A DNA stretch of 64,000 nt from Setoptus koraiensis (Eukaryota > Animalia > Arthropoda). The stretch is from the NCBI GenBank assembly GCA_048013815.1, contig CM106586.1, positions 16,554,001 through 16,618,000 on the forward strand, in the 5' to 3' direction. The position numbers and the translations under genes are program-made. Shown in pieces: positions 23,690 through 64,000 of this stretch. The first letter of the stretch is position 1. Each line of letters opens with the position of its first letter. A model generated the notes under the pieces. The model saw only the letters and a list, made by a program, of their open reading frames with translations. It did not search any database and had not been told where the DNA came from.

Positions 23690-23832
23690 GTAAGTGGCTC
23701 ATCGACGACCAATTTCAAAAACTCAATCATTATCACTTTGTACTTTGACACACTAACACCACTCACTCGACCAACTCAATCAATAATCACGTTTAATTGT
23801 CCTATCCTGTCTCCTTTCGCCCCCCACCAATC

Positions 23833-44357: not shown

Positions 44358-44591
44358 TCTGAGACCTAACGAAGACTAACTATACCAAGTATAATTATTT
44401 TCACACACAAAGGCATACAAAACAAAGAAACTTTGGGCAACACGTGAGAATCTCTTTTTCAGAATAAAATAATTTGAATTCTGGTATGTTTGATGACATA
44501 TACGTGCTGGTGAATATTTCCGAGAATCAAATGCACCAATGAAACGGGAACAAGTGATATAGAACAAGATATCTGGCAATCGGAAGTGATG

Positions 44592-44896
44592 AATGCAGAA
44601 TGTCCCACTACAGTAGGCTACCTTTAGTGTTAATTTTCTGAGTTTTCTAGGTAAACTTAAATTCTTTGCCTTTGAGAGCATCTATTGTTTTTTTTTAGTT
44701 TTCCATTCCGACAGGTTATTGCCTCAGATGGTAAAGTTCCTCTTGTTCTATGCCGAGAAGCTTATTGGCTTCATCGGCCCAAATTATCACAATTCCGGTT
44801 GCCGTGCTGTCTCTTATTTTCAGATCAGTTCTGTGCTTGGGCATTGAGATTTTTAACGATAGGTGCGTTAATGGTAACACGACCTCTAACATTGAA
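44592..44896 (-). pseudogene. Decayed mini-RPA1 (type II) copy with a large internal deletion and several stops
   Basis: The minus strand reads FNVRGRV.. joined almost directly to RTDLKIRDSTATGIVIIWADEANKLLGIEQEELYHLRQ*PVGMEN*KKTIDALKGKEFKFT*KTQ, homologous to the intact copies. Confidence 0.85.
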
Positions 44897-45891
44897 GCAC
44901 TATTGAAACTTTTGTTAGACTGAGATCTTCAACAAGTGTATCTATATAGTGAATGCTTTCGATGACTTTCCGGCTTCGAAAGAAGTGGCGAATCAAGCTG
45001 GCTCAATTTCCTGTTTGTGCGAGCTTGATTTTGCAGTTGAGCTGCTGAAATTAGATGAACAATTCAAAGCCAAATCTAGCCAGGGAAAATATCTGAAGAG
45101 CAAGCAAAAGAAGACCGGCTCGCTTCTAGGGACTATTTGCAGGTCAAGTTGCTCTGATTCGCAAGAAATCTCTGGCACAAAAACTACTATCAGCAGAAGA
45201 TAGTCATGATGAGTTAGTAGCGAGTCTTGGCATGGTGATTGCAAGGTCGGGAGCGAATGAGGCGGAACTCGGTGGAAGCCACTCTAAGAATCCCCAAAAA
45301 AGCACGAAAAAGCGGCTGAGCCTAGCCATAAAATACATCCCAAATGTGTTCATGAAAGCAGGAAATCTCATACTGACCGAGTCGGGGTTGGTTAGCCTGG
45401 AAAAGATACTTGGCACGAAATGATCATGAGAATTCAGATGGGAGTGAGTTCAACTCAATTCCTCTCATTTTCTCTATCTTTCTCTCTGTCTCTCCTCACC
45501 ATAACCTCTAAGCGACCTAGTCTCGTCGCTAGGCCACTCACTTAACAGTTCTTAGTATGCAAATATGGAGCGTAGATGGTGTTGTAAGCGACAGAGTAGG
45601 TGGGAGTGTATTTTATCTGCAATCACAGTCGAGGTCTCAGCCGACTACTAGAGTATCAGCATCTGATTACGGGTTGCAATGTCAGCTAACTTGTGTGACA
45701 AATTCGATAAGAAGATGTTGTGATATGATTGCTGCTTATCTCGATTTCTCTAGAGAAAATGATTCATTACAAATTGTATTGAGCAACATTGGAGGCACCA
45801 TTTTCATCTTATGAGGCCAGTTATCTATTTCATGTAATCACAGAAGCAGGCAAGACCACTAACCATCCACTTAGACTATTAGACAAGAAAG

Positions 45892-46758
45892 ATGTCGGCA
45901 GCACATCCGCCTCGATCTCTCATCGATCGAAATGTTAGGAATATAGCCTCACTAAACTCCAATATTGGAACAAAATGGCTCATAAAAGGTACTGTTACGA
46001 TGAAGTCTGAAAAAAGCCGTTGGAACGATATATGCGATCGATTTACATTCAAAATCAAAGATAAATCGGGAGAAATTGAGTTCACAGCTTTCAACAAACA
46101 ATGTGACAAATGGTTCGACTTCATCGAACAAAATGAGGTCTACTATATCGCTCGTGGCAGAGTAACAGGAAAAAACCGCTGTGATCTGCTGCCTAGCAGT
46201 CTCGTCGAGCGAATCAGTCCTCGAGCAATCAGTGAGGCCGACCCAGGATATAATGATGCATCTATACATGAACTGAGACATTTGGAAGATTGCTTAAATG
46301 TTGATCTGGTGGGAAGCCAGCGTGAGCAAGTTTTATACAGCGTGGTTGATGCTGAAATACTAGAAGTTAATCAGAACGAACCCACCTATAGATCTTGTCC
46401 AATGAAAGGATGTTTAGAAAAGGTAGAGCCATATGAAAAATCAGGCTGGGAGTGTAATAAATGCGGAATCATCTACCGACATCATAAATATACGTACAAA
46501 GTCACATTAAAGCTAAAAGACGAGACGGCCGAACTTTTGGCCTATATTTCGGGCGACGAAGCTCAGAGGCTACTGGGTGAGAATCCATTTGATCTGTTCG
46601 TGATAGGACAAAACATTGGTGAAATGGATGAGTACGAGCGGATAATGTCTGCTCCTACCGGGAAAAAGTTCAAATTTACCTTGAAAACTCAATTTAGTAT
46701 ATTAGAAAATGTTGATCTTGAGCACCATGTCAAGAACCTCGAGTTGATCAAATCTTAA
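45892..46758 (+). CDS. Mini-RPA1 type I: RPA70 DBD-A-like OB fold fused to a DBD-C-like zinc-ribbon OB fold, 288 aa, intronless
   Basis: KWLIKGTVTMKS..RFTFKIKDKSGEIEFTAFNKQCDKWFDFIEQNEVYYIARG matches RPA70 DBD-A ([51 protein letters not shown]). YRSCPMKGC-x13-CNKC has the C-x4-C-x13-C-x2-C spacing of the RPA70 zinc ribbon, followed by YKVTLKLKDETAELLAYISGDEAQRLLG..YERIMSAPTGKKFKFTLK. Confidence 0.85.
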   Translation: MSAAHPPRSLIDRNVRNIASLNSNIGTKWLIKGTVTMKSEKSRWNDICDRFTFKIKDKSGEIEFTAFNKQCDKWFDFIEQNEVYYIARGRVTGKNRCDLLPSSLVERISPRAISEADPGYNDASIHELRHLEDCLNVDLVGSQREQVLYSVVDAEILEVNQNEPTYRSCPMKGCLEKVEPYEKSGWECNKCGIIYRHHKYTYKVTLKLKDETAELLAYISGDEAQRLLGENPFDLFVIGQNIGEMDEYERIMSAPTGKKFKFTLKTQFSILENVDLEHHVKNLELIKS

Positions 46759-47330
46759 AAATTAATCTTACATTCCAGACTCATGCAATATGCCATTAAA
46801 GAAGCCATCATATTGCGATATATGTTGGCCTGTATGCTGACCATGAATAAAGATATTAAATATGAAAGAGATCGCCCCAGAATTGGGCTGTTTTCAGGAT
46901 CTTGTATTTCTTTTTCCCTCGCTAAAACAGCTCTATCTATCGAAATCACTTCAATGCGTTGCTCTGACATGGGAATTTGTAGCGGATGTGGCTAGTTCAA
47001 AGGAAAAGGATAACCACGAACGGTTATCCAATTCGCTTGAGGTATGAAATGGAAATCCATACTCGACCGGTTATTTGATCAATAAATACCTGTTTCTGTC
47101 ATATTTGTTGACAAATATCTCATCCATCCGGTATTCTCGAGCTGCATTGTTGATCGCGACAGCACACCCTCTTTTTTGGGTGAGAATCGGTACATCAAAC
47201 ATAGACACTCGTCATGGCAACAAGATTCGCACTACATGAACATGTTTTGAATGAACAGATACGAGATTCTTTGTTGTCTATATCAACTGCGAATGCATCA
47301 ATTGATATCAAACATTACAAATAGGTATAT
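46446..47330 (+). repeat. Segmental duplication block (type I 3' end plus flank); partner at ~57481-58230
   Basis: Shared long stretches such as aaaattaatcttacattccagactcatgcaatatgccatta and aacagatacgagattctttgttgtctatatcaactgcgaatg. Confidence 0.85.
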
Positions 47331-47699
47331 TAGAGGCCTATAAATAGCTGCTGACAGCCGCTTCTGTAAGCTTATCATCTGCAGATATCAAGATCAAACA
47401 ACTATTGATCGACAATACAATGTATCATATGAGTCACAAAAGTCCAGCAGGACACTTTCGGTATCAATTTGATAGTTTGGTAACCCTTTTTTTCGTTCTT
47501 GTTGCGTATGTGGTGGTTTGCGATACTGGAATATAAACGCCAAGTTCTTGCATGACTCATTCCCTCGTGAGTGAGTCATACAATGACTATTTATAAGATT
47601 AACCATCGATGGAACCCAATACTAACTTCATCCAATAATTCAAAACATTTTGGCGTGGCGTATAGCTATATTTTTCAAACTTTTTTTCGACGGCAAGAG

Positions 47700-47707
47700 T
47701 ATAAATA
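47700..47707 (+). promoter_or_regulatory. TATA box (TATAAATA) ~115 nt upstream of the mini-RPA copy at 47814
   Basis: Same motif and spacing as in the copies at 58589, 56504 and 63081. Confidence 0.6.
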
Positions 47708-47813
47708 GCGGCTAGAAACAGAATTGTGGTATACTCGCTACTAATGAATCATCATTACCGATACTTAAAAAACTTCACTGATCAGCTATTCAAAGAAAAT
47801 AAATCTTTTCGGA

Positions 47814-48632
47814 ATGCCCTCTGCAAACGTATGTAGAGCTTGTCATGACCAAGCTTTTGTGGACATCGGATCGGTCAGTGCTGGAGACATACTCAATATA
47901 AGAGGTCGTGTCATCAGTAAGTCATCATTCCTTCATCGTGGTCTTAATGGATTGTACTCTTATTTCAAAATTCTCGACCAATCTGGTTTAATCAAAGTTA
48001 TCGACTCCAGTGATAGAACTGAATTCAGCGATCTCATTGAATATGATGGAGCTTATCATATAAAATGTGGACATATTAAGAAATTCAAGAATGGGTTAGC
48101 GTGTTATATTGAAGAAGGCACCACTATAGAGACGTGTGGAAATAGCGAAGCACAACTGGAGGCACCAAGAACATTGAGGCAATGTTTCGATCACACATTT
48201 GTTAAAGCTATTCCCGTACTTACTATGTATAGCCTAATCGATATTGTAATCGAGAAGGTTATTGATTGTAAGAGAGATATAGCTTGTGAATTCACGTGCC
48301 GCGAAGGTATAGAGCAAAGAGGTGCTAGATGGTGGTGCGTCAGATGCGAGAATTTTCGAAACCCAATCTTTCATTACCGAACTTTTTTGAAAATAAGAGA
48401 CAGCACGGCAACCGGAATTGTGACGATTTGGGCCGAGGAAGCCAGAAAGCTTTTTGGGGTTGAACAAGCGGAATTGTACCGTTTGAAGCAAGAACCTGCC
48501 GAAATGGCAGAATACGAAAGGATAATTGGTGCCGTCAAAGGCAAAAAGTTCACCTTCACCTTGAAAAGTCAGTTTCTGACTTTCACTTTGGACGCAGTGA
48601 AACATACGGTAGTTGGCCAATCTGCCATGTAA
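47814..48632 (+). CDS. Mini-RPA1 type II, 272 aa
   Basis: N-terminal CRAC motif; LNIRGRVISKS..FKILDQSGLIKV..YHIKCGHIKK..IEEGTTIETC (DBD-A-like); ACEFTC..WWCVRC zinc ribbon; LKIRDSTATGIVTIWAEEARKLFG..FTFTLKSQF (DBD-C-like). Confidence 0.82.
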   Translation: MPSANVCRACHDQAFVDIGSVSAGDILNIRGRVISKSSFLHRGLNGLYSYFKILDQSGLIKVIDSSDRTEFSDLIEYDGAYHIKCGHIKKFKNGLACYIEEGTTIETCGNSEAQLEAPRTLRQCFDHTFVKAIPVLTMYSLIDIVIEKVIDCKRDIACEFTCREGIEQRGARWWCVRCENFRNPIFHYRTFLKIRDSTATGIVTIWAEEARKLFGVEQAELYRLKQEPAEMAEYERIIGAVKGKKFTFTLKSQFLTFTLDAVKHTVVGQSAM

Positions 48633-48749
48633 AATAGGAGGCACCACTCACGACAGACGGATAGCTTCTCTAGAAACTGATATTCCATTGTTGGCGATGG
48701 AGCATGAGTCATAGTCAAGATTCAAGGGATCTATCATGAGCAACTCATA

Positions 48750-48890
48750 AGAGTGAAGGTTTTGTTTGATTTAAAAACTTTATTTTTAAATCAAACAAAA
48801 TCTTAACTCTGCTACTTATTCAGGTGAGGATTTTGCTTGATTTAAAAACTTTATTTTTAAATCAAGGAACATCTTCACTCTGCTACTTAT
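48750..48890. repeat. Two tandem ~71-bp units, each an AT-rich palindrome with ~27-bp arms
   Basis: agagtgaaggttttgtttgatttaaaa-actttat-ttttaaatcaaacaaaatcttaactct (2 mismatches between arms), then gctacttattc and a second, more diverged unit. Confidence 0.9.
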
Positions 48891-48969
48891 GTTCTGCTTG
48901 ATGCAAAGTATGATCGATTCTACTTATATTTAGCATCATTGATAATAAAAAAAAAATGTTAAAGTATAT

Positions 48970-49535
48970 ACTCGTCGATATACTTTATCAACATACATAT
49001 CAGGGTTCCATATAGATGAAAATTATTTTATTCTGAAAAATAGATCCTTAAATATTGCCTTGAGTTTCTTTGTTTCGCAAGCCTGTGTGTGTGGAAACAA
49101 TTATACACGGTATAAATAGTCTTTGATCTCAGATCAAGCGTTTAGGCCCAGGTAAGGATCAGTTGAGGTGGAATCACAATTGTCGCACTTGTTGACTCCA
49201 GGATGATTGAGATAATAGTTATGCGGTTTTATTGCACTGGATTTCAAAAACTTTTCACTTTGTAGTGTTCATTTATGCGTCAGATAACTAGAATACATAT
49301 GATTAGACTAATCAGTAATGAGTATAATACACAAGAGTTTTCAATAGTTTGCATTTTGCATGCATAAGAGAATCAATGTGTGATTTAAATTATCAGCATG
49401 AATCTACTGCTTCTTTATGCGACATGATGCGCATTCTAGTTCAATCCCTAGCTAAGTTGATTATTCGGACCCTCGCTGATATATACTCTTGCAATTGTTC
49501 GCGACCAATTTATTGCAATCTCTGTGTTGGTCTAT
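48970..49535 (+). repeat. Duplicated non-coding block; partners at ~59630-60165 and, in part, ~51950-52125
   Basis: Shared gatccttaaatattgcc..gtataaatagtct..gatctcagatca..aatcaatgtgtgatttaaattatcagcatgaatc... Confidence 0.88.
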
Positions 49536-50044
49536 TATTATATTATTATAACAGATTCAGTGTGTTATACTTGCTAACAATGAATTTCTAGTGATGATAC
49601 GCAAGAAACTTAAATAACCACCTACTCAAAGAAAATAAATATTATTTGGAATGTCCGAAATTGCATGTAGAGCGTGTGATGAACAAGCCGTTGTGGACAT
49701 CGCATCCGCCATTGTCGGAGGAGGCACGGTCAATATTAGAGGTCGTGCCATCTGGAAGACAAGGCTTCATCGTGATAACAGTGAATTGTATTGCACTCAT
49801 TTCAAAATTCTCGACCAATCAAGTTCAATCGTAGTTATTGACTCCGGTGATAGAGCTGGATGGGATTTCTCTGAATGTGGTAGAGTTTACCATATAAAAT
49901 GTGGACATATAAAGAAATTCAAGGAGGAGTTGGCGTGTTATATTGAAGAAGACACCACTATAGAGACGTGTGAAGATAGCGAAGCACAAGAGGAGTTACC
50001 AAGAACATTGCGTCAATGTTCCAATTCCGAATTGGTCGAAGCTA

Positions 50045-51365
50045 ACTTATGGTAAGTAATAATTGTCCCTTCTTTTTTTTGAACGGGTAACGCACAGAAT
50101 GAGAGCATAGTGATCATGTCACATGTTATTGAACACGTGTGTGATTAGGCAACCAGAATATGTGATTTATTATATATTAGAGTAATTATTTATTAAGAAA
50201 ATGGCAATAAACGAAGAGCTAGTGAGAGAAAGAGTTGTCAACTTCTACGAGAACCATGCGGAGCGCGACTTATTAAAAACTATTTATCAATTCAACTCCC
50301 AAACAAACCAAACCAATTCAACCAAATCAAGAACTGTGAGAAGAATTGTCGAGAGATATAGAGAGACAGGCTCGATCAAAGAAAAACCTGGTTCTGGTCG
50401 TAAACCGTCAGTTTTGACGCCTCAAAATCTCAACAAGTTGAAAGAGATGTTCACTGACACAGATGATTGGTCATACCGACGGGATGCCAAAAAGTTTAAA
50501 ACTTCTCATGGCCATATTAGTAAAACATTTGATCGCAAATTTGGTGTCAAGTCAAGAAAGAACAATATAGCACCCAAATACAAGGATGGTGATGAAGAAA
50601 AGATAATGCTCTAGTGCAAGGCTCTCACCCGGATGTTCCATGTGAAGCAAATAATTTTGGATGACGAGAAGTATTTCAGCCTCAAAGACAAATCTCACCG
50701 ATATTATTATCCCGATGATCCAACTGGAACTCCAAATGATGTCGAATTCAGAGCAAGTGAGAAATACACCCCCAAAATGTTGGTTTGGCTAGCCGCATCA
50801 CCAAGAGGATTATCTGAAGTTTACATTCACAAGAGCTCGAATGCCATTAATTCGGAAGTTTATACAACCAAATGTTTGACCAAGCTAGTGAAATTTATAG
50901 AGAGTCACCATAGTGATGGTGAATATTATTTTTGGCCTGACAAGGCAAGTTCACATTATTCAAATGTGACAGGAGAATTTTATCGTGATCACGACATCAA
51001 TGTCGTACCACTCGATTCAAACCCAACAAATCTTCCTCAGGCTCGACCTATCGAAGATTTTTGGGCAATTTTGGATCGGATGGTGTGGTCTGGTCGTAAT
51101 AGACCAACCACAGTCGATTCTCTGATCAAAAGAATCAAATATTGTGTGAAAAATATTGACCCAAATGTGGTACACGCCACTTTTGGGTCGACGAAACGTC
51201 GAGTGAGAGAGTGTGGAGTTAATGGACCTTACTCCATAATTCATTGATGTGAGATATTCCTCAGATATCTATCTAACTAATGTTAAAAATTTTATCCTTC
51301 TATCTACAACAATAATAAAGCAATCCCAGAAGAGACGAGAGCGACGAATTTTACTTACCATACGT
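50045..51365 (+). mobile_element. Tc1/mariner-superfamily DNA transposon, DD37E type, 1321 bp, TA target-site duplication
   Basis: Imperfect TIRs: left ACTTATGGTAAGTAATAATTGTC; right, reverse-complemented, ACGTATGGTAAGTAAAATTCGTC. TA at 50043-50044 and 51366-51367. Internal transposase. Confidence 0.93.
50201..51247 (+). pseudogene. DD37E transposase with a single in-frame TAG at 50612-50614
   Basis: ORFs 50201-50614 and 50633-51247 share a frame. HTH region (RTVRRIVERYRETGSIKEKPGSGRKP). Catalytic ILDDEKYF, YFWPDKASSH and NPTNLPQARPIEDFW, with 37 residues between the second D and the E by manual count. Confidence 0.9.
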
Positions 51366-51949
51366 TACGCCCCACGGGACTATGTATATGTATGTAAAAG
51401 ATGAACCTGCCGATGTAGTAACTGAGAAAGTCGTCGATTGCGAGAGAGATTGCCGAATTGGATGCGGAAATTTAGAGCGACTAGGCGATAGATGGTGGTG
51501 CAGTGGATGCGGAGAGTTTCAAAACCCTGTCTTTCATAAAAAAACTTATCTGAAAATAAGAGACAGAGCGTCGACCGGATATGTGATGATTTGGGCCGGA
51601 GAAGCCAAAAAGCTGTCCGGGGTAGAAATATCCGATATGATGCGAGATTTATACGATTTGAAGCGAGGTTTGGCTGGAGAGGTAAACAACAAAAGAATTA
51701 TACATGCCGTCGAAGGCAAAAAATTCAAATTTATCTTGAAAACTCAGTGGCTCAATTCCTTTCTTAGGAGGCTTAGGCTTAAAAGATTCGTAGGTGGACA
51801 TTCTGTGGAGGACATGTATAATGCATTCCTTCACTCACGATAGCCAGGAAGTTTCTTGAGAAAAACTCGATGGTTGACGATCGAATACTTGTCGTGATCA
51901 ATGGATTCAAAGGATCCTTCCAACCATCTGATTTGATTCTGACTTCCTA

Positions 51950-53520
51950 AGAAAATCAATGTGTGATTTAAATTATCAGCATGAATCTACTGCTTCTTTA
52001 TGCGACATGATGCGTATTCTAGTTCAATCCCTAGCTAAGTTGATCATTTGGACCCTCGCTTATATGTGCTCTAACAATTGTTCGCGACCAATTTATTGCG
52101 ATCTCTGTGTTGGTCTTTTACTCACAAGACCGTCGATGTGTAAATCACAATAGCTGCAAATGAGCAAATTATTATAAAATCACATGATACTGGCTGTGGT
52201 TTGCCTACGCTGAGATGAAGCAGTTGCTTGTCTTGTCGCAAATTTTATAACGACATATAAAATATGTATAGATTGTAGTTGAGGCACATCTCATTCAATC
52301 TCCAATCAACGAAGAACGCGAACGCAAGAACGATAACAATTGACCGAATTGAATTGCATAAGGGATTACTAAATAAATAAACAGGAAATGAAATCTTCAA
52401 CGTGTCGAGCTATTCTTTGCGCTGTGACTTTAGTCATCTTGGCTACTGACTTTGCTATTGCAACCGTTACTCTAAAAGCGGAGCATTTGTTCGACAATGA
52501 AAAACTAGAAGAGATCTTTTCGAGTTTCGTCCAACTGAATGGAAGGCTGGACAATAACTCAACGAGAGAAGTTTACTCGGTTCGCAAGGCAGTTTTCAAA
52601 CAGAACATGTTGATGGTGCTCAGATTTGATTGATTGCGACCAGGTCGATCAAGGTTGCAATGGTGGTCTACCCGAGATTGCCTACAAGCAGGTCATGAGC
52701 TTAGGTGAGTTTCGCAAGGTAACATCGTCTTGATAAATTCGGCTTGTCTGGCTAACATACAAATCTTGTTGAACCAAATTCATAGGTGGACTAGAGAAAG
52801 AAGAAGATTACGCTTACACGGGCAACCAATCCAGGTGCAGCATGGATAAGAGACACAAAAAGTATACCATTGATAATTTCACCCATTTGACACAAAATGA
52901 CGAAAAAAGAATGAAGATTTGGCTGGCGAAACGTGGGCCAATCTCTGTGGCCATCGACACAGAAGATTCATTAAAATACTATGTGGAGGGCGTTTATCTT
53001 CCCAATGAGGGCGACTGCAGTAAAAAACCAGAGAAACTCAACCACGCAGTACTAATAGTTGGATATGGCGTTGATGAGAAGCACAAACCAGAGCTTCCGT
53101 ATTGGATCGTAAAAAATAGCTGGGGTACTCAATGGGGCGAAAGTGGCTTTTTTAGACTGTACCGAGGTACAAACGCCTGCGGTGTAGCTTATGATCCCAG
53201 TACCGCTTTGTTGCTGACAAAAGACTGAAGAAATCAAAGAGGCTGTTGCATTGGTTGATTGGAAGATTCTAATGTGAATGAATTCTTCAAATACCGTACC
53301 AGACCGTTATCTCCGTTATGTGACGAACAGTTACATAAATAATATAAGTTTAGTGCAAATGAACTCAGGCAAACAACTATTAGAATCTATGACGAAGCCA
53401 GTTGGTATTGATGACGGGAATAACCAGTAAAAATAGATTGCTTGCTTTCGTGGCCGGCCCATTTTCTTCTTGCAACTGACAAGAATGTTTCTCTTTTTTT
53501 TATTTACAACAACTCGATGT
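51950..53520 (+). repeat. Segmental duplication containing the cathepsin gene; partner at ~59995-62115
   Basis: Near-identical sequence apart from a 592-bp deletion in this copy. Confidence 0.9.
52388..53228 (+). pseudogene. Cathepsin F-like paralogue with a 592-bp internal deletion removing the catalytic-Cys exon
   Basis: Near-identical to the 60432 gene up to aaacagaacatgtt, then jumps to gatggtgctcagatttg (intron 2 / exon 3 boundary of the intact copy), giving a premature stop after MLMVLRFD. The QGKRCGSCW exon is absent. Confidence 0.92.
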
Positions 53521-54257
53521 GAGTTTCAATGTAAGTTTATTTTCAACTGCGTACTGATCGAGAGCTAGGTGTGTTTACGAATATTACTAATGAAGTTACA
53601 CGTACAAAAAACTTATGACCCAATCGGGCATTTTGTATCCTCGTCTGCATGGGATGATGTAGCAATATTTACAACATCAAAATATTGCATCCTTACATGA
53701 AATCGATGTAGCCAACGCACGTACTCATATATAATGCGGATACTGGTTATGGGTGAGAATGGGCGCGTGCGGTCGGGTATCGGTTGACGGGCATGACATT
53801 CTGGATAAACAGATACGAGATTCTTTGTTGTCTATATCAACTGCGAATGCATCAATTGATATCAAACATTACAAATAGGTATATTAAAGGCCTATAAATG
53901 GCTGCTGACAGCCGCTTTTGTAAGCTTATCATCTGCAGATACCAAATCAATCAATTATTGATCGACAATACGATGCATCATGCTAGTGACAATAGTCCGA
54001 CAGCACACTTTCGCTATCAGTTTCGCTATCGATTCCTCAAGAGTGAGTCATGCCATGACTTATCTTCTTCATCCAATCATTGAAATCATAGATGGGGACC
54101 GACATAGCTTTTTTAAACTATTTAGCGAAGCCAATAGTATAGGTAGCAACTATCCCAACAGATTCAGAATGGTATACTTGCCAACAATGAATTACTAGTG
54201 ATGATACGTAAGAAGCTTCAATAATCAGCTATTCAAAGAAAATAAATATTATTTGGA

Positions 54258-55082
54258 ATGTCCGCAATTGCATGTAGAGCGTGTGATGACCGAGCCGTTG
54301 TGGACATTGCATCCGCCATTGTCGGAGAAGGCACGGTCAATATTAGAGGTCGTGTCATCAGTAAGTCATTCCTTCATCGTGGTCGCAATGGATTGCATTC
54401 TTATTTCAAAATTCTTGACCAATCTAGTTTAATCAGAGTCATCGACTCCGGTGATAGAACTGGATTCAGCGATCTCGTTGAATATGATAGAGTTTATCAT
54501 ATAAAATGTGGACATATTAAGAAATTCAAGAAGGAGTTTGCGTGTTATATTGAAGAAGACACCACTATAGAGACGTGTGAAAATAGAGAAGCACAACTGG
54601 AGGCACCAAGAACATTGAGGCAATGTTTCGATTACAAATTTGTTAAAGCTATTCCCGGACAGACTATATATAGCCTAATCGATATTGTAATCGAGAATGT
54701 TATTGATTGTGAGAGAAATATAGCTTGTGAATTCGGGTGCCGCGAAGGTATGAAGGTGGTAGAGCAAACAGGTGCTAGATGGTGGTGCGTCAGATGCGAG
54801 GATTTGAGAAACCCAATCATCCACTACAGAACTTTTTTGAAAATCAGAGACAGCACAAGAACCGGAAAAGTAACAATATGGGCCGAGGAAGCCAGAAAGC
54901 TTTTTGGGATAGAACAAAAGGAATTGTACCATTTGAAGCAAGAATCTGCCGGAATGGCAGAATACAAAAGAATAATTGGTGCCGTCGAAGGCAAGATGTT
55001 CAAATTCACCTTGAAAAGTCAGTTTCTTTTCTCCACTGAGAAAGGACTGAAACAAACGGTAGTTGGACATACTACAATGTAA
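54258..55082 (+). CDS. Mini-RPA1 type II, 274 aa
   Basis: Intact ORF with CRAC motif, both OB-like halves and the ACEFGC..WWCVRC zinc ribbon. Its TATA position is degenerate (TATAGGTA, 54138). Confidence 0.82.
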   Translation: MSAIACRACDDRAVVDIASAIVGEGTVNIRGRVISKSFLHRGRNGLHSYFKILDQSSLIRVIDSGDRTGFSDLVEYDRVYHIKCGHIKKFKKEFACYIEEDTTIETCENREAQLEAPRTLRQCFDYKFVKAIPGQTIYSLIDIVIENVIDCERNIACEFGCREGMKVVEQTGARWWCVRCEDLRNPIIHYRTFLKIRDSTRTGKVTIWAEEARKLFGIEQKELYHLKQESAGMAEYKRIIGAVEGKMFKFTLKSQFLFSTEKGLKQTVVGHTTM

Positions 55083-55682
55083 AATGCAAGGCGCCACTCA
55101 CCATAGCCGGATAGCTTCTCGAGAAAAACTTTCTTCTTAAGTCAAGAGAAATCATTACTCTACGACTTATTCGGTATTACTTATATCTTGCATTATGCAA
55201 GGTATAATCGATTCTATGATTATACTCAGCATCATTCATAATAAAAAAATGATGAAATATATGTATCGATATACTTTATCAACATAGATATATATCAGGG
55301 TTCTATTTAGATAAGATTCATGATTCAAATTAGAATGTGAATGAATTCTTCAAATACCGCACCAGATTAGTATGTGAGGAACAGTTATAAAAATCATATC
55401 AGTTTAGTGCAAATGAACTCAGGCAAACAACTATTAAATTTATGACGAAGCCAGTTGGTATTGATGAGGGGAATAAATAGATTGCTTGCTCTCGTTGCCG
55501 GCCCATTTTCTTCATGTAACAGACAAGGATGTTTCTCCCTTTTTTTTATTTACGACAACTCGGTGATACACAAAACCAGCGTATGCGAACTGCTTTTCGC
55601 CCAAATACATGTAATTAGTTTCGTAATCGACACCGATCCATAGAGAGCTATCGGACTGGAGTCGTGAGAGGTGACATGCATT

Positions 55683-56504
55683 TTACATTGCGGAATGTCC
55701 AACTACGGTCTTTTTCAGTTTCGGTTTACCTCGCGAATGACTGAACTGACTTTTCAGGGTGAATTTAAAGCTTTTGCCTTTGACGGCATTTATAATTCTT
55801 TGGTAGTTTTCCTCTCCAAAAAAATCTCGCTTCAAATGGTAGAGTTCCGATGGTCCTACGCCGAACAGCTTTTTTGCATCATCGGCCCAAATTATCACAT
55901 TTCCGGTTGCCGTTCTGTCTTTTATTTCCAAAATAGTTCTGCAATGAGATAATGGGATCTGAAATTTGTTGCAGAAACCGCACCAGCATCTACCGCCTAT
56001 CTGCACTAAATTTGCGTTGCATCCGAATTGACACTTTATGTAATCTCTTTCGCAATCAATAACATTCTCAATTACGATATCGACGTTACTATACATAGTC
56101 CGACCGGGAATAGCTTTAACCAATTGTAGATCGAAGCACTCCCTCAATGTTCTTGGTGCCTCCAGTCGCGCTTCGCTATTTTCACACGTCTCTATCGTGG
56201 TGTCTTCTTCAATGCGACATGTAAGCCCATTCTTGTTTTTTTTAATATGTCCGCATTTTATATGATAAACTTTATCATGTTCAACGACATTGCCAGTTCT
56301 ACCATTGAAGTCGATAACTATAATCGCACCAGATTGGTCGAGAATTTTGGAACGAGAATACCAGCCATCTCGAAAACGATAAGGCTTTGTTCTCTTAGTA
56401 GTGACTCGACCTCTAATGTTGACCACCTCCTGTCCAGCAGTGATTGAAGCGATGTCCACAAAGTCTTGATCATCGCAAGCTCTACAAATGGTTACACGAG
56501 ACAT
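55683..56504 (-). CDS. Mini-RPA1 type II, 273 aa
   Basis: MSRVTICRACDD..VNIRGRV..KILDQSGAI..YHIKCGH..IKCQFGC..CWCGFC..LEIKDRTATGNVIIWADDAKKLFG..FKFTLKSQF. Confidence 0.82.
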   Translation of the reverse strand: MSRVTICRACDDQDFVDIASITAGQEVVNIRGRVTTKRTKPYRFRDGWYSRSKILDQSGAIIVIDFNGRTGNVVEHDKVYHIKCGHIKKNKNGLTCRIEEDTTIETCENSEARLEAPRTLRECFDLQLVKAIPGRTMYSNVDIVIENVIDCERDYIKCQFGCNANLVQIGGRCWCGFCNKFQIPLSHCRTILEIKDRTATGNVIIWADDAKKLFGVGPSELYHLKRDFFGEENYQRIINAVKGKSFKFTLKSQFSHSRGKPKLKKTVVGHSAM

Positions 56505-56593
56505 TTCAAATAAGATTTTTTTTCTTCGAGTAGCGGGTCATTGAAGTTTCTTTTGTATCATTTCTAATGATTCATTTGAGTCAAGTATACTAC

Positions 56594-56624
56594 ACTGAGT
56601 CTGTCGGCATGGTTGCTATTTATA
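56594..56624 (-). promoter_or_regulatory. TATA box plus TCAGT initiator of the 56504 copy
   Basis: The minus strand reads TATAAATAgcaaccatgccgacagacTCAGT. TCAGT is the arthropod Inr, and the spacing is ~28 nt. Confidence 0.65.
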
Positions 56625-57166
56625 TTACTGACCTAACTGGATAGTTTAAATAAACTATAGCGAAATGTCCCGCCTCTATGTTTTCAGTGATCGGATGAAT
56701 TTAGTTCTGCATTCTATAGATAGTTGTTTCTTATGCTAGTCATATACGATTCATTGCATGACAGACTCGCTAGGAATCGAGTCATGCAGGAACCCAGCGT
56801 TTGTATTCCAGTTTCGCAGACCACAAGCTGAACGGAAAACATGAAAAACAAAAAAGGATTATAAAATTGTCAAATTGATAGCGATAGTGTGCTGTCGAAA
56901 TATTGTCACTATTGTATTGCATTGTCATTGAATAATTGTTCGATCTTGATATCTGTAGATGATAGGCTCGCAAAAGCGGCTGCTCAAAGCCTATTGAACT
57001 TGGTTTTGATGCATAGTGGATTTTATCTGATCGGCACGAAGGGGGGGGATGGCTACATATTATAAATTGGCGAGCATCAATCAATTGAAGGGCAATGATA
57101 CTGCGATAACTCGTTCGTGGAGTATTTTTTGCAAAAAAGTATTTGGAAGTGCATCTTGGATACAGC

Positions 57167-57469
57167 AGTTTTCCTCTCCGGCAAAATCTCGCTTCGAATG
57201 ATAGAGTTCCGCTTGTTCTACCCCGAACAGCTTTTTTGCTTCTTCGGCCCAAATCGTCACATTTCCGGTTGCCGTGCTGTCTTTTATTTCCAGAATAGTT
57301 CTGTAATGAAATATTGGGATCCGAAATTTGTTGCAGCAACCGCGCCACTATCTACCGCCTCTCTGCTCTAAATTTGGGTAGCATCCGTATTGACACTCTG
57401 TGTAATCTCTCTCACAATCAATAACATTCTCAATTACGATATCGACGTTACTATACATAGCCTGACCGG
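57167..57469 (-). pseudogene. Internal mini-RPA1 type II fragment (DBD-C-like half) with a premature stop
   Basis: GQAMYSNVDIVIENVIDCERDYTECQYGCYPNLEQRGGR*WRGCCNKFRIPIFHYRT..HSKRDFAGEEN; truncated at both ends. Confidence 0.88.
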
Positions 57470-57480
57470 CCAATACATAT

Positions 57481-57678
57481 TGCTGGAAGTGTAATAAATG
57501 CGGAATAATCTACCGACACCATAAATATACAAAACATTTGTGAAGTGCATGAGTACGAGCGGATAATGATTGCTCTTACCGGGAATAAGTTCAAATTTAC
57601 CTTGATGACTCAATTTAGTATATTAGAAAATGTTGATCTGGAGCATCACGTCAAGGACCTCGAGTTGATTAAATCTTA
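57481..57678 (+). pseudogene. 3' fragment of mini-RPA1 type I with an internal deletion
   Basis: WKCNKCGIIYRHHKYT-[deletion]-EVHEYERIMIALTGNKFKFTLMTQFSILENVDLEHHVKDLELIKS*, matching the C-terminus of the 45892 gene. Confidence 0.88.
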
Positions 57679-58468
57679 AAAATTAATCTTACATTCCAGA
57701 CTCATGCAATATGCCATTAGAGAAGCCATCATATTGCGATATATGTCGGCCTGTATATTGACAGAGAATAAAGATATTAAATATGAAAGAGATCGCCCCG
57801 GAATCGGGCCGTCTTCAGTCTCATATTCCTTTCTCCCTCGCTATAACAGCTCTATTGACTATTCGTCGAGTATTATCTGGCTAGTTCACACCATTTTAGA
57901 TGGAGAAGGATAACCACGAATGGTTAACCAATTCGCTTAAGCTATGAAATAGAAATCCATACCCGACCGGTTATTTAAACAATCAATACCTGTTTTTGTC
58001 ATATTTGTTGACAAATATCTCATCCACGTTCTCGAGCTGATATTGATGATCGCGGCAGCACACCCGTTTTTTGAGATGCGGATCCGTACATCGAGCATAG
58101 ATACGCGACATGGCAGCAAAATTTGCAATAGATGAAAATGTTTTGGATAAACAGATATGAGATGCCTTGTTGTCTATATCAACTGCGAATGTATCATTTT
58201 ATAGCAAACTGTGTAAATAGGCACATAGATGGCTGCAGACAGCCGCTTCTGTAAGGCTTCCAGCTGCACATATCAAATCAGTCAACTATTGATCAGCAAT
58301 ACGATGCATCATACTAGTGACAATAATCCGACAGCACACTTTCGCTATCAGGTTTGCTATCGATTCCTCACGAGTGAGTCATGCCATGACTTATCTACTT
58401 CATCCAATCATTGAAATCATAGATGGGGACCGCCATACCTTTTCTAAACTATTTAGCGAAGCCAACAG

Positions 58469-58476
58469 TATAAATA
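58469..58476 (+). promoter_or_regulatory. TATA box (TATAAATA) of the 58589 copy
   Basis: Conserved motif and spacing across paralogues. Confidence 0.6.
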
Positions 58477-58588
58477 GCAACTATCCCAACAGATTCGGTG
58501 TGGTATACTTGCCAACAATGAATTACTAGTGATGACACGTAAGAAGCTTCAATAACCAGCTATTCAAAGAAAATAAATATTATTTGGA

Positions 58589-59401
58589 ATGTCCGCAATT
58601 GCATGTAGAGCGTGTGATGACCGAGCCGTTGTGGACATTGCATCCGTCATTGTCGGAGAAGGCACGGTCAATATTAGAGGTCGTGTTATCAGTAAGTCAC
58701 GCCTTCATCGTGGTCGCAATGAATTGTATTCTTATTTCAAAATTCTCGACCAATCTAGTTCAATCCGAGTTATCCACTCAGGTGATAGAATTGGACGTAA
58801 TCTCGTTGAATATGATAGAGTTTATCATATAAAATGTGGACATATTAAAAAATTCAAAAATGAGTTTGCGTGTTATATTGAAGAAGACACCACTATAGAG
58901 ACGTGTGAAAATAGCGAAGCACGACTGGAGTCACCAAGAACATTGAGTCAATGTTTCAATTCCGAATTGGTTAAAGCTACGCCCGGGCAGACTATGTATA
59001 GCACTACCGATTTAGTAATTGAGAAAGTTATTGATTGCGAGAGAGACTACATAGCCTGTCAATTTGGATGCAGCGAAAATTTAGAGCAACGAGGCGGTAG
59101 ATGGTGGTGCAGTAGATGCGGAGAGTTTCGAAACCCAATCTTTCATTACAGAACTTATTTGAGAACAAGAGACAGCACGGCAACCGGAATTGTGACGATT
59201 TGGGCCGAAGAAGCAAAAAAGCTGTTCGGGGTAGAACAAGCGGAACTATACCATTTGAAGCGAGATTTTGCTGGAGAGGAAAACTACAAAAGAATTATAC
59301 ATGCAGTCGAAGGCAAAAAATTCAAATTTATCTTAAAAACTCAGTGGATCAATTCCCTTTTTGAGCTGAAAAAAACCGTAGTTGGACATTCTGCGAGGTA
59401 A
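58589..59401 (+). CDS. Mini-RPA1 type II, 270 aa
   Basis: Intact ORF: CRAC, VNIRGRVISKS, YHIKCGH, IACQFGC..WWCSRC, RDSTATGIVTIWAEEAKKLFG, FKFILKTQW. Confidence 0.82.
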   Translation: MSAIACRACDDRAVVDIASVIVGEGTVNIRGRVISKSRLHRGRNELYSYFKILDQSSSIRVIHSGDRIGRNLVEYDRVYHIKCGHIKKFKNEFACYIEEDTTIETCENSEARLESPRTLSQCFNSELVKATPGQTMYSTTDLVIEKVIDCERDYIACQFGCSENLEQRGGRWWCSRCGEFRNPIFHYRTYLRTRDSTATGIVTIWAEEAKKLFGVEQAELYHLKRDFAGEENYKRIIHAVEGKKFKFILKTQWINSLFELKKTVVGHSAR

Positions 59402-60431
59402 AATGTATGGCTTCACTCACGATATCCAGAAAGTTTCTTGAGAAAAACTCGATGGTTGACGATTGAATACTTGTCGTGGTCAATGGATTCAAAGGATCCG
59501 TCCTATCGATCTGACTTGTCGTTTTGATCCGAAAAAAATCCCTATTCTACTATTTATGTGTTGCCTGATCAATTCTATGATTGTACTTTGCATTATTCAC
59601 AATAAATGATGATAACGTATACATATCAAGACACACATTGGAATGAAAATTATTTTATTGTGTAAAGGAGATCCTTAAATATTGCCCTGAGTTTCTTTGT
59701 TTCGCAAGCCTGAGTGCGTGGAAACAATTATGCACGGTATAAATAGTCTCTGATCTCAGATCAGGCGTTTAGGCCCAGTTAAGGATCAGTTGAGGTGGAA
59801 TCACAATTGTCGCATTTGTTGACTCGAAGATAATTAAGATAATATTTATACGGTTTTATTGCACTGGATCTCAAAAACTTTTCACTTTGTATTGTTCATT
59901 TACGCGCCAGATAACTAGAATACATATGATTAGACTAATCATTAATGTGTATAATACACAAGAGTTTTCAATAGTTTGCATTTTGCATGGATAAGAGAAT
60001 CAATGTGTGATTCAAATTATCAGCATGAATCTATTGCTTCTTTATGCGACATGATGCGCATTCTAGTTCAATCCATAGCTGGGTTGATCATTCGGACCCT
60101 CGCTTATATGTACTCTCACAATTGTTCGCGACCAATTTATTGCGATCTCTGTGTTGGTCTTTTACTCACAAGACCGTCGATGTGTAAATCACAATAGCTG
60201 CAAATGAGCAAATTATTATAAAATCACATGATACTGGCTGTGGTTTGCCTACGCTGAGATGAAGCAGTTGCTTGTCTTGTCGCAAATTTTATAACGACAT
60301 ATAAAATATGTATAGATTGTAGTTGAGGCACATCTCATTCAATCTCCAATCAATGAAGAACGCGAACGCAAGAACGATAACAATTGACCGAATTGAATTG
60401 CATAAGGGATTACTAAATAAATAAACAGGAA

Positions 60432-61864
60432 ATGAAATCTTCAACGTGTCGAGCTATTCTTTGCGCTGTGACTTTAGTCATCTTGGCTACTGACTTTGCT
60501 ATTGCAACCGTTACTCTAAAAGCGGAGCACCTGTTCGACAATGAAAAACTAGAAGAGATCTTTTCGAGTTTCATCCAGCTGAATGGAAGGCTGGACAATA
60601 ACTCAACGAGAGAAGTTTACTCGGTTCGCAAGGCTATTTTCAAACAGAACATGTTAAAAGTGCTCAGATTGAACAGGATACAACAAGGATCAGCCAAATT
60701 TGGTGTGAGCATATTCGCTGACCGAACCGAACCTGAATTCAAGCAATTGCTCGGATACAATCCAAAATTAGCAAAATTATCAACGGAAGAAGATAATGGT
60801 CTTGACTTCGAAGTACTTTTCAATGAGTTACTCAAAGAGGAGGAGAAGAGCGAGAAGGAATTGCTGGAATCAATGCCATCAACATTCGATTGGCGAGATC
60901 ACGAGGGCGTCGTCACTCGTGTCAAGGATCAAGGTAACTGGTGAGATGATCGAGTGTTCTTTCGAGAATTCTCCAGATAAGCTAACTAATTATGGCCGTG
61001 TTTTTGGAAAATCCTCACAGGTAAACGATGTGGTTCATGTTGGGCTTTCGCTACTACGGGTAACATTGAGGGCCAGTACAAAGTTAAAAAAGGCATAACT
61101 GTCTCATTATCGGAGCAAGGTGAGCAGCAAGTCTCTCGATTGCATCGTTACATTTTGCGCCATACTATCTAGATTGAATGCTAATCAATGTCTATTGATC
61201 ATGAATGAACGACATCACTGAATATTATTGGAATCTCTATGTTTGTTGATGGTGCTCAGATTTGATTGATTGCGACCAGGTCGATCAAGGTTGCAATGGT
61301 GGTCTACCCGAGATTGCCTACAAGCAGGTCATGAGCTTAGGTGAGTTTCGCAAGGTAACATCGTCTTGATAAATTCGGCTTGCCTGGCTAACATACAAAT
61401 CTTGTTGAATCAAATTCATAGGTGGACTAGAGAAAGAAGAAGATTACGCTTACACGGGCAACCAATCCAGGTGCAGCATGGATAAGAGACACAAAAAGTA
61501 TACCATTGATAATTTCACCCATTTAACACAAAATGACGAGAAAAGAATGAAGATTTGGCTGGCGAAACGTGGGCCAATCTCTGTGGCCATCGACGCAGAA
61601 GATTCATTAAAATATTATGTGGAGGGCGTTTATCTTCCAAATGAGGGCGACTGCAGTAAAAAACCAGAGAAACTCAACCACGCAGTACTAATAGTTGGAT
61701 ATGGCGTTGATGAGAAGCACAAACCAGAGCTTCCGTATTGGATCGTAAAAAATAGCTGGGGTACTCAATGGGGCGAAAGTGGCTTTTTTAGACTGTACCG
61801 AGGTATAAACGCCTGCGGAGTAGCTAATGATCCCAGTACCGCTTTGTTGCTGACAAAAGACTAA
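60432..61864 (+). CDS. CTSF: Cathepsin F-like papain-family (C1A) cysteine protease, 374 aa. Exons 60432-60933, 61021-61119, 61260-61340, 61422-61864.
   Basis: Signal peptide; I29 prodomain with [19 protein letters not shown] (cathepsin F-like GVTKFSDLTEEEF); [17 protein letters not shown]; CGSCWAF; SLSEQDLIDCD; GCNGGLP; [11 protein letters not shown]; [10 protein letters not shown]. Three phase-1 GT-AG introns give 1125 nt of coding sequence. Confidence 0.9.
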
Positions 61865-62265
61865 AGAAATCAAAGAGCCTGTTGCATTGGTTGATTGGAA
61901 GATTCTAATGTAAATGAATTCTTCAAACACCATACCAGACTAGTTATGTGCGGAACAGTTACATAAATAATATCAGTTTAGTGCAAATGAACTCAGGCAA
62001 ATTTATGGCGAAGCCAGTTGGTATTGATGAGGGGAATAAATAGATTGCTTGCTCTCGTTGCCGGCCCATTTTCTTCTTGTAACTCACAAAAATGTTTCTC
62101 TTTTTTTTTATTCACAACATCTCAGTGATACACAAAACCAGCCGATGAGAACTGCTTTTCGCCAAAATACATGTAATTAGTTTCGTAATCGACACCGATC
62201 CATAGAGAGCTATCGGATTGGGGTCGAACGGATTTTTGCGGCGATCGTGAGAGGTGACATGCATT

Positions 62266-63081
62266 TTACATTGCGGAATGTCCAAATACGGTTTGTTTCA
62301 GTTTATCTAGCGAATTGGTAGACTGACTTTTCAGGGTGAATTTAAATCTTTTGCCTTCGACGGGATGTATAATTCTTTTGTAGTTTTCCTCTCCAGCAAA
62401 ATCTCGCTTCAAATGGTATAGTTCCGCTTGTTCTACCCCGAACAGCTTTTTTGCTTCTTCGGCCCAAATCGTCACATTTCCGGTTGCCGTGCTGTCTCTT
62501 ATTCTCAAAATAGTTCTGTAATGAAATATTGGTTTCCGAAATTCGTTGCAGCAACCGCACCACCATCTACCGCCTCTCTGCTCTAAATTTGGGTAGCATC
62601 CGAATTGACACTCTGCGTAAAATCTTTCGCAATCAATAACATTCTCAATTACGATATCGACGTTACTATACATAGCCTGACCGGGAATAGCTTTGACCAA
62701 TTGTAGATCGAAGCACTCCCTCAATGTTCTTGGTGACTCCAGTCGTGCTTCGCTATTTTCACACTTCTCTATCGTGGTGTCTTTTTTAATATTACACGCT
62801 AACCAATTCTTGTATTTCTTAATATGTCCGCATTTTATATGATAAACTTTATCATATTCAACGACATTGCCAGTTCTACCATTGAAGTCGTTAACTCTAA
62901 TTGCACCAGATTGGTCGATAATTCTGAAACGAGAACACAAGCCATCTTGGAAACGATTGAGGCTTGTTTTCTTAGCAAAGAGACGACCTCTAATGTTGAC
63001 CACCTCCTGTCCATCAGTGACTGAAGCGATGTCCACAAAGTCTCCATCTTCACAAGCTCTACAAACGGTTACAAGAGACAT
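62266..63081 (-). CDS. Mini-RPA1 type II, 271 aa
   Basis: MSLVTVCRACED..VNIRGRL..IIDQSGAI..YHIKCGH..AECQFGC..WWCGCC..LRIRDSTATGNVTIWAEEAKKLFG..FKFTLKSQ. Confidence 0.82.
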   Translation of the reverse strand: MSLVTVCRACEDGDFVDIASVTDGQEVVNIRGRLFAKKTSLNRFQDGLCSRFRIIDQSGAIRVNDFNGRTGNVVEYDKVYHIKCGHIKKYKNWLACNIKKDTTIEKCENSEARLESPRTLRECFDLQLVKAIPGQAMYSNVDIVIENVIDCERFYAECQFGCYPNLEQRGGRWWCGCCNEFRKPIFHYRTILRIRDSTATGNVTIWAEEAKKLFGVEQAELYHLKRDFAGEENYKRIIHPVEGKRFKFTLKSQSTNSLDKLKQTVFGHSAM

Positions 63082-63170
63082 TTCAAATAAGATTTGTTTT
63101 CTCCGAGTAGCGGGTCATTGAAGTTTCTTTTGTGTCATCTCTAATGATTCATTGGAGTTGAGTATACCAC

Positions 63171-63201
63171 ACTGAGTCTGTCGGCATAGTTGCTATTTAT
63201 A
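63171..63201 (-). promoter_or_regulatory. TATA box plus TCAGT initiator of the 63081 copy
   Basis: The minus strand reads TATAAATAgcaactatgccgacagacTCAGT, the same arrangement as at 56594-56624. Confidence 0.65.
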
Positions 63202-64000
63202 TTATTGACCTAACTGGATGGTCCAAATAAACTATAGCGAAATGTCCCGCCTCTATGTTTTCAGTGATCGGATGAATTTAGTTCTGCATTCTATAGATAG
63301 TTGTTTCTTATGCTAGTCATATACGATTCATTGCATGACAGACTCGCTAGGAATCGAGTCATGCAGGAACCCAGCGTTTGTATTCCAGTTTCGCAGACCA
63401 CAAGCTGAACGGAAAACATGAAAAACAAAAAAGGATTATAAAATTGTCAAATTGATAGCGATAGTGTGCTGTCGAAATATTGTCACTATTGTATTGCATT
63501 GTCATTGAATAATTGTTTGATCTTGATATCTGTAGATGATAGGCTCGCAAAAGCGGCTGCTCAAAGCCCATTGAACTTGGTTTTGATGCATAGTGGATTT
63601 TATCTGATCGGCACGAAGGGGGGGGGGCTACATATTATAAATTGGCGAGCATCAATCAATTGAAGATTAATGATACTGCGATAACTCGTTCGTGGAGTAT
63701 TTTTTGCAAAAAAGTATGTGAAAGTGCATTTTGAATATATTGGTAGCCGTGTCAGCGCCTGATCATAAATTACAATGTCAGCTATTATGTTTGGTGAGAA
63801 GAGGTTGATAAGATTATTGTTGATAATGATTTAGCTAATAAAGGATTGACTAGATATTGCGTTCAGCATCATTGGAAACTTCATTTGTAACTTTTGAGGC
63901 CAGTTGCATTCTGTAATGTGAATGTTTATGTCGTCACAGTAACGATTGATTCCAATAATCATCTACGTAAAATTATCTGACCAGAACGATGGCAGGACCT

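Follow-up and report, generated by a model that had tools for sequence, protein, structure and literature searches.

In a 64,000-nucleotide stretch of the genome of the mite Setoptus koraiensis (contig CM106586.1, positions 16,554,001 to 16,618,000 of assembly GCA_048013815.1; the whole stretch is hereafter the window), we identified a compact array of genes related to RPA1 (RPA70), the canonical single-stranded DNA (ssDNA) binding protein. A tblastn comparison of the six intact proteins of the array with the whole window located ten loci at positions 44578-63081, which comprise, on both strands, six intact open reading frames (ORFs), one copy split by a transposon, and three fragments. Each intact gene is one unbroken intronless ORF of 270-288 aa, and its product consists of the domain DBD-A joined to a zinc-ribbon DBD-C, without DBD-F and DBD-B. 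We refer to these proteins as mini-RPAs. The gene at 45892 is designated type II and the remaining five intact genes type I; the two types are 27-30% identical to each other, and the type I proteins are 60-77% identical among themselves. Our preferred interpretation, to which we assign a probability of about 0.65, is that the mini-RPAs are a lineage-specific RPA1 paralogue family that arose from the mite's own RPA1 and was amplified in place.

The domain identity of the two halves was established by several profile and sequence searches. The Pfam model Rep_fac-A_C (PF08646) matched all six intact proteins above its gathering cut-off (E 8.5e-9 to 2.5e-17), and a sub-threshold OB match (tRNA_anti-codon) was obtained for five of the six N halves. 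In phmmer searches against the PDB, the N half of the type II protein aligned to residues 186-264 of human RPA70, within DBD-A (E 3.7e-10), and its C half to residues 466-550, within DBD-C; the signal of the type I N half alone was weak (1jmc_A, E 0.046). Because of this weak signal, we made separate profiles for DBD-F, DBD-A, DBD-B, and DBD-C from 107 canonical RPA1 proteins and scanned them over the mini-RPAs. All N halves matched the DBD-A profile, with 71-74 bits for type II and 23-33 bits for type I (E 1.6e-8 to 7.7e-12), and all C halves matched the DBD-C profile (46-84 bits), their alignments stopping at model positions 128-145 of 166. DBD-B (REPA_OB_2, PF16900) was not detected in the mini-RPAs, its profile scoring at most 6.5 bits, and neither was DBD-F, for which the best profile match had an E value of 1.6 and Pfam Rep-A_N (PF04057) gave no match. 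As a reverse check, a profile of the mini-RPAs was matched to 142 canonical RPA1 proteins; it fell on their DBD-A and DBD-C regions and always skipped DBD-B. The mini-RPAs start 10-27 residues ahead of the DBD-A barrel. Their two barrels are only ~25-40 residues apart, and this stretch aligns to the N-terminal region of the eriophyoid RPA1 DBD-C module; the missing part is therefore DBD-B with its linkers. The four zinc cysteines (C481, C486, C500, and C503 in human RPA70 numbering) are invariant in all copies.

The reduction also concerns the C-terminus. In an alignment of 114 rows, the mini-RPAs stop at about residue 625 of the 642 residues of Aceria RPA1, just short of the conserved helix at the C-terminus of RPA70, which is packed against RPA32 and RPA14 in the solved structure of the RPA trimerisation core. 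An exon for the trimerisation helix was looked for downstream of every copy and none was found. The loss of the trimerisation helix extends the confirmed domain reading of the mini-RPAs. An AlphaFold2 model that used only the six paralogues as its alignment was too weak to use (pLDDT 60), and the usable model, of the type I copy at 54258, was obtained with the 114-row alignment (scores in Table 1). It contains two beta-barrels, and its top PDB matches in Foldseek were the RPA70 proteins of Ustilago and human and the RPA of Pyrococcus abyssi. In comparisons by VIA-align, model residues 4-114 matched P. abyssi OB-1 (Z 14.2), Teb1 OB-A (Z 13.6), and yeast DBD-A (Z 12.0, 23% identity), and residues 113-274 matched Teb1 OB-C (3u50, Z 16.4), the best single structural match to the C half. 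The superposition of residues 114-116 to 274 on human RPA70 residues 439-441 to 597 has a Z of 15.8-15.9 and a root mean square deviation of 2.7-2.8 Å, and it ends at residue 597 of 616. The original prediction, made from the letters of the window, had described the array in much the same terms. Its count of loci, their coordinates, and the lengths and intronless state of the intact copies are correct; its assignment of the N half to DBD-A agrees with the profile searches, which point to neither DBD-B nor DBD-F, and its four-cysteine zinc-ribbon DBD-C is borne out by both the DBD-C profile and the cysteines. RPA-type OB folds, as expected from its alignment of the two halves, are what Foldseek and VIA-align return for the modelled copy.

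Among canonical proteins, the family profile matched best the RPA1 of two eriophyoid mites, Aceria tosichella and Fragariocoptes setiger. We reconstructed a maximum-likelihood tree from segments A and C of the mini-RPAs, of 37 eriophyoid RPA1, and of 16 other RPA1, a set without Helitron RPA-like sequences labelled as such. The mini-RPAs nest with the eriophyoid RPA1 in one clade (support 100/98) and are themselves monophyletic (99/96). The clade forms a trichotomy of the mini-RPAs, the F. setiger RPA1, and the other 36 eriophyoid RPA1 (95/85), in which the exact position of the mini-RPAs carries long-branch warnings. A quick tree with 75 canonical RPA1 matches of the wider search gave an identical grouping. 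Given that the family groups with eriophyoid RPA1, its source is the host's own RPA1 and not a Helitron. All of the ~35 eriophyoid RPA1 proteins found retain the four Pfam domains, and therefore the short form is an addition and not the normal RPA1 of the lineage.

The type II gene has a conserved position. A 9.95-kb contig of a related species (L001), whose flanking genes are 76-79% identical to those of the window, carries GLT25, Cyt-b5, one type II gene, and cathepsin L in this order, with no type I gene in between. The type II orthologue on this contig (P0002) has 282 aa and is 49% identical to the 45892 protein. Type II-like sequences occur in two further samples (L003:27-595 and L004:273-939) and are 54-71% identical to type II of the window. 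Among the best 150 of 1,025 matches in a search of 1.84 billion representatives, type I was present in no other data set, and weak relatives could be hidden beyond these matches. A word-indexed protein search found nothing with a type I copy and one fragment of 158 aa with type II.

Comparison of the window with itself showed that the duplicated blocks vary in extent. In gene-centred blocks, a mini-RPA is flanked by 190-460 bp of upstream and 40-100 bp of downstream sequence. One block of 1.85 kb (55334-57162 and 61907-63737) is 90% identical between its copies, a cathepsin-bearing block (51948-53515 and 59992-62123) is 94-97% identical, and a further block combines the type II 3' end with its spacer (46608-47466 and 57529-58350). 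The first cathepsin copy (51948-53515) is probably dead because it lacks 574 bp equivalent to 60670-61244. The type I copy at 58589 is a mosaic, with an N half 92-96% identical to that of the 54258 copy and a C half 85-90% identical to that of the 62266 copy. The genes spread by segmental duplication and inversion, not by transposition of a fixed unit; there is gene conversion among the type I copies, and the array is under birth-and-death evolution. The expanding family of the original prediction is thus recovered as a set of segmental duplicates, with five type I genes found, among the matches listed, only in this window. The element inside the split copy is classified as Tc1/mariner-like on account of its HTH_32 and DDE_3 ORFs. 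Its 28-nt terminal inverted repeats (TIRs) lie at 50043-50070 and 51340-51367, with TA at either edge. A frame break separates the HTH ORF from the DDE_3 ORF, and the element itself may be decayed or intron-containing.

The variable blocks bear on a different explanation, in which the mini-RPAs would be cargo of a Helitron/Helentron-like mobile element and the array a product of transposition rather than of host gene duplication. RPA-like genes are borne by Helitrons in plants, zebrafish, sea anemone, and Drosophila (PMC4683698), a DNA transposon is present inside the array, and the closest short structural neighbours of the mini-RPAs in AFDB are plant DUF223/Rep_fac-A_C proteins of 315-466 aa. 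These plant PHRPA/DUF223 proteins resemble the mini-RPAs in being short, RPA1-derived, multi-copy, and highly divergent, and in having an OB followed by a zinc DBD-C. However, they are tied to Helitrons, whereas the mite family belongs to the host RPA1 clade (100/98), is syntenic for type II between two species, and shows no Helitron context in the window. The plant Helitron RPA-like proteins fall outside the core RPAs in the tree of the source paper (PMC4683698). Moreover, no Rep/helicase ORF was found in the 21 kb at 43000-64000, and the self-comparison revealed no array-like sequence at positions 1-43000. The shared blocks include a cathepsin gene and show no fixed unit with termini, and the Tc1/mariner-like element interrupts one copy and carries none. 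We consider cargo of a transposon, which the original prediction had named as a possible refutation of its proposal, to be unsupported by this evidence and extremely improbable.

The mini-RPA family is constrained, but far less than the neighbouring genes. Between the window and the related species, type II has a nonsynonymous divergence (dN) of 0.385 and a ratio of nonsynonymous to synonymous divergence (omega) of 0.30, in contrast to 0.054 and 0.08 for Cyt-b5, 0.111 and 0.12 for GLT25, and 0.166 and 0.14 for the cathepsin N-terminus. Type II thus evolves fast when set against its neighbours. For nine of the ten type I pairs, dN is 0.12-0.28 and omega 0.39-0.59, with a bootstrap P(omega >= 1) of <=0.01. 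Alleles of two type I genes in a second sample differ at 17 and 7 sites, including 11 and 5 amino-acid changes and zero stops; cross-mapping of paralogues could contribute to these differences.

The canonical nucleic-acid-contact residues, among them the stacking aromatics F238 and F269 of DBD-A and W528, F532, and Y581 of DBD-C, are only partly retained. K263 is K in all five type I copies, and R234 is R in three of them, K in one, and I in one. F238, present in 106 of the 107 canonical RPA1 proteins, appears in type II as F or Y; of the type I copies, two have F and three have S. The position of F532, which is F in canonical RPA1, is occupied by W in the type I copies and in P0002, the type II orthologue, and by S in the 45892 protein of the window. 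W528, Y581, and E277 are lost, and the F269 loop is shortened so that no confident alignment is possible. With the contacts retained only in part, ssDNA binding by the mini-RPAs may be weak or altered; nucleic-acid binding as such is plausible, and it is not a property to be read from the sequence. A further feature shared by the five type I proteins is an N-terminal CxxC (residues ~7-10) together with a C-x-H in the OB barrel (~87-89), both absent from type II and canonical RPA1. These might form a second metal site, the first ten residues of the model being of low confidence.

The replaced contacts could be explained in another way if the mini-RPAs no longer bound nucleic acid and the OB and zinc-ribbon scaffold bound protein instead, for example by competing with or regulating the partners of canonical RPA. 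Most of the stacking aromatics are lost together with E277, and the CxxC and C-x-H of type I are new. Such a change of ligand is nevertheless very unlikely in our view: R234 is kept as R or K in four of the five type I copies, K263 and an aromatic residue at F532 in all five, and F238 stays F or Y in type II. In addition, both OB barrels are modelled with high confidence, and the vast majority of OB folds in this clade bind nucleic acid.

Several observations weigh against a paralogue family of the kind proposed here. The youngest type I pair (55683 and 62266) has a dN of 0.134 and an omega of 1.26 (0.79-2.48), which is compatible with neutrality. The type II-like genes of L003 and L004 each have one frameshift, and these are either pseudogenes in those species or contig errors. 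Contact positions are changed at F238 (three of five type I copies), W528, Y581, E277, the F269 loop, and F532 of type II. The alignment used for the structure model included canonical RPA1 rows, so that the agreement in structure partly depends on that in sequence; it supports the sequence result without being independent proof. In read mapping over 5,601 bases, the runs containing the array have an even depth across genes and spacers, as DNA would, and are therefore uninformative on transcription. The runs X6-X8 contain the pyruvate kinase gene (23797-25533) at 0.87-1.00 of words and are not listed for the array (54258-59401), a pattern that could reflect an array-lacking transcriptome, a strain difference, or a limit of the listing.

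Part of this evidence would fit a type I array that is mostly debris, that is, young duplicates from unequal crossing-over that are still open, functionless, and pseudogenising, with at most type II being functional. Besides the omega of the youngest pair, the absence of any sign of expression in runs that look like DNA, and the loss of invariant RPA residues such as F238, this account would cover the three fragments and the transposon-split copy within 19 kb, the second-sample differences (about two thirds of them amino-acid-changing), and the absence of type I from other data sets among the best 150 of 1,025 matches. It fits less well with five frames of 270-274 codons that are still open at a synonymous divergence (dS) of 0.1-0.59, with an omega significantly below 1 in nine of ten type I pairs, with the zinc cysteines and OB core retained in all copies, and with 80-460 bp of upstream sequence co-conserved with each gene. 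We regard the debris explanation as unlikely.

Under the preferred interpretation of a family derived from the mite's own RPA1, a copy of this gene would have been reduced to DBD-A and a complete zinc-ribbon DBD-C, without DBD-F, DBD-B, and the trimerisation helix at the C-terminus. The type II gene between Cyt-b5 and cathepsin L would be the conserved founder. Type I would come from the same stock as type II; segmental duplication, inversion, and gene conversion would have multiplied it at the locus, and truncation and the transposon hit would account for the lost copies. The products would be stand-alone two-OB, zinc-containing nucleic-acid binders that could neither enter the RPA70-RPA32-RPA14 trimer nor recruit DBD-F partners, and for that reason they would act beside canonical RPA rather than replace it. 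The fast protein evolution would point to a specialised role, possibly in the germline or in genome conflict; the telomere, meiotic, stress, and antiviral roles of the original prediction are putative. The host mites are haplodiploid and have streamlined genomes. A more far-reaching proposal, which we put forward as speculative and rather improbable, is that these mites evolved from their own RPA1 a trimer-independent and fast-diversifying system for binding single-stranded nucleic acids, with type I engaged in genetic conflict or in a germline or chromosome-end function. Such conflict might involve, for instance, sequestering the ssDNA intermediates of viruses or of rolling-circle or cut-and-paste transposons.

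The loci of the array and its neighbours are listed in Table 1. The genes of the window are of animal type and have very few introns, which, together with the best RPA1 matches, points indirectly to an eriophyoid mite. The G+C content falls near 22 kb, from 0.55-0.60 at positions 1-22000 to ~0.40 at positions 22000-64000, and ordinary animal genes (CBF-beta, pyruvate kinase, a MyTH4-PH-FERM protein, and GLT25) lie on either side of this drop.

Table 1. Mini-RPA loci and neighbouring features in the window (positions are those of the window).
Feature	Position	Strand	Evidence or remark
Pseudogene fragment, C-half residues ~187-256, with stop codons	44578-44877	-	tblastn
Type II mini-RPA, intact, 288 aa	45892-46758	+	Pfam Rep_fac-A_C E 2.5e-17; DBD-A profile 73.7 bits, DBD-C 82.3 bits
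Type I mini-RPA, intact, 272 aa	47814-48632	+	DBD-A profile 22.6 bits, DBD-C 53.4 bits
Split type I copy, N half	49651-50043	+	tblastn, 76% identical to residues 1-130 of the 58589 copy
Tc1/mariner-like DNA transposon, ~1.3 kb, inside the split copy	50045-51365	+	HTH_32 and DDE_3 ORFs, TIRs
Split type I copy, C half	51337-51807	+	tblastn; Rep_fac-A_C E 0.0018
Type I mini-RPA, intact, 274 aa, modelled copy	54258-55082	+	AlphaFold2 pLDDT 87.4, pTM 0.76
Type I mini-RPA, intact, 273 aa	55683-56504	-	ORF, Pfam, domain profiles
Type I pseudogene fragment, residues ~132-233	57168-57548	-	tblastn
Type II-like 3' fragment	57466-57676	+	tblastn; downstream spacer co-copied
Type I mini-RPA, intact, 270 aa, mosaic	58589-59401	+	ORF, Pfam, domain profiles
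Type I mini-RPA, intact, 271 aa	62266-63081	-	ORF, Pfam, domain profiles
Cyt-b5-domain gene, conserved left neighbour, synteny anchor	43380-44357	+	
Cathepsin L-like gene, right neighbour conserved in the relative	60295-61864	+	Second copy at ~51948-53515

The top match of the exhaustive profile search, a protein of 4022 aa (P0001), was rejected as a relative of the family, being a mis-annotated satellite in an unrelated genome (GCA_964258995.1). At L002:15756-52908 (CAXVIE010000190.1), an array of at least 26 tandem units of ~1478 bp is annotated as a whole as one 4022-aa protein. Each unit of this satellite encodes a DBD-A-like fragment ~30% identical to the mini-RPAs, so that the array is a satellite of an RPA1-like piece.

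Animal RPA1 is normally a single-copy, slow-evolving, four-domain protein. Canonical RPA1 (e.g., A. tosichella A0A6G1SHJ3) shares with the mini-RPAs a DBD-A-like OB and a complete four-cysteine DBD-C, homologous in both sequence and fold. It has ~620-650 aa, whereas the mini-RPAs have 270-288 aa, are multi-copy and fast-evolving, lack DBD-F, DBD-B, and the trimerisation helix, and have several ssDNA-stacking residues replaced. The large subunits of archaeal RPA (Pyrococcus abyssi Rpa1, Methanococcales RPA) have a similar layout, with an OB followed by a zinc-bearing OB, and are among the structural matches (8oej_A, Z 14.4; 8aa9_A OB-1, Z 14.2; A6UTW0, TM 0.64). However, they retain the trimerisation interface and partner subunits and are 14-18% identical to the mini-RPAs, and by this comparison they are best taken as an analogy of layout, not as the source of the mini-RPAs. 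Tetrahymena Teb1, a component of telomerase, is likewise a lineage-specific RPA1 paralogue with a specialised role, but its N, A, B, and C domains are all retained and it forms a trimer with Teb2 and Teb3, in contrast to the mini-RPAs without the B domain and trimerisation helix. MEIOB and Drosophila hold'em, found among the feature-based neighbours, are animal RPA1-derived paralogues with germline roles; they differ in having OB_MEIOB_N and REPA_OB_2 and no RPA70-type zinc-ribbon Rep_fac-A_C, and their sequences are not close to those of the mini-RPAs. Of the large Atlas clusters nearest to type II, almost all retain DBD-B.

What is new here is the minimal A-plus-C layout of an animal RPA1 paralogue family. 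The novelty does not extend to the combination of an OB with a zinc DBD-C, which is known from short RPA-like proteins of plants and, as the original prediction had noted for some of them, archaea. We found no description of mini-RPA-type genes of eriophyoids in the papers searched, and the genome paper of Aculops lycopersici does not mention RPA, in agreement with the earlier view of the family as undescribed.

A half-size derivative of RPA1 is thus kept in an animal lineage whose genome is among the most streamlined, and in one species it has multiplied. The mini-RPA retains the highest-affinity OB fold and the zinc domain and sheds the partner-binding parts of RPA70. If the genes are not expressed, the locus would still be a clean example of birth-and-death evolution and gene conversion. 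If they are expressed and their products bind nucleic acid, the mini-RPAs would provide a natural minimal RPA module for biochemistry and represent a rare animal case of a housekeeping ssDNA binder recruited to a fast-evolving family.

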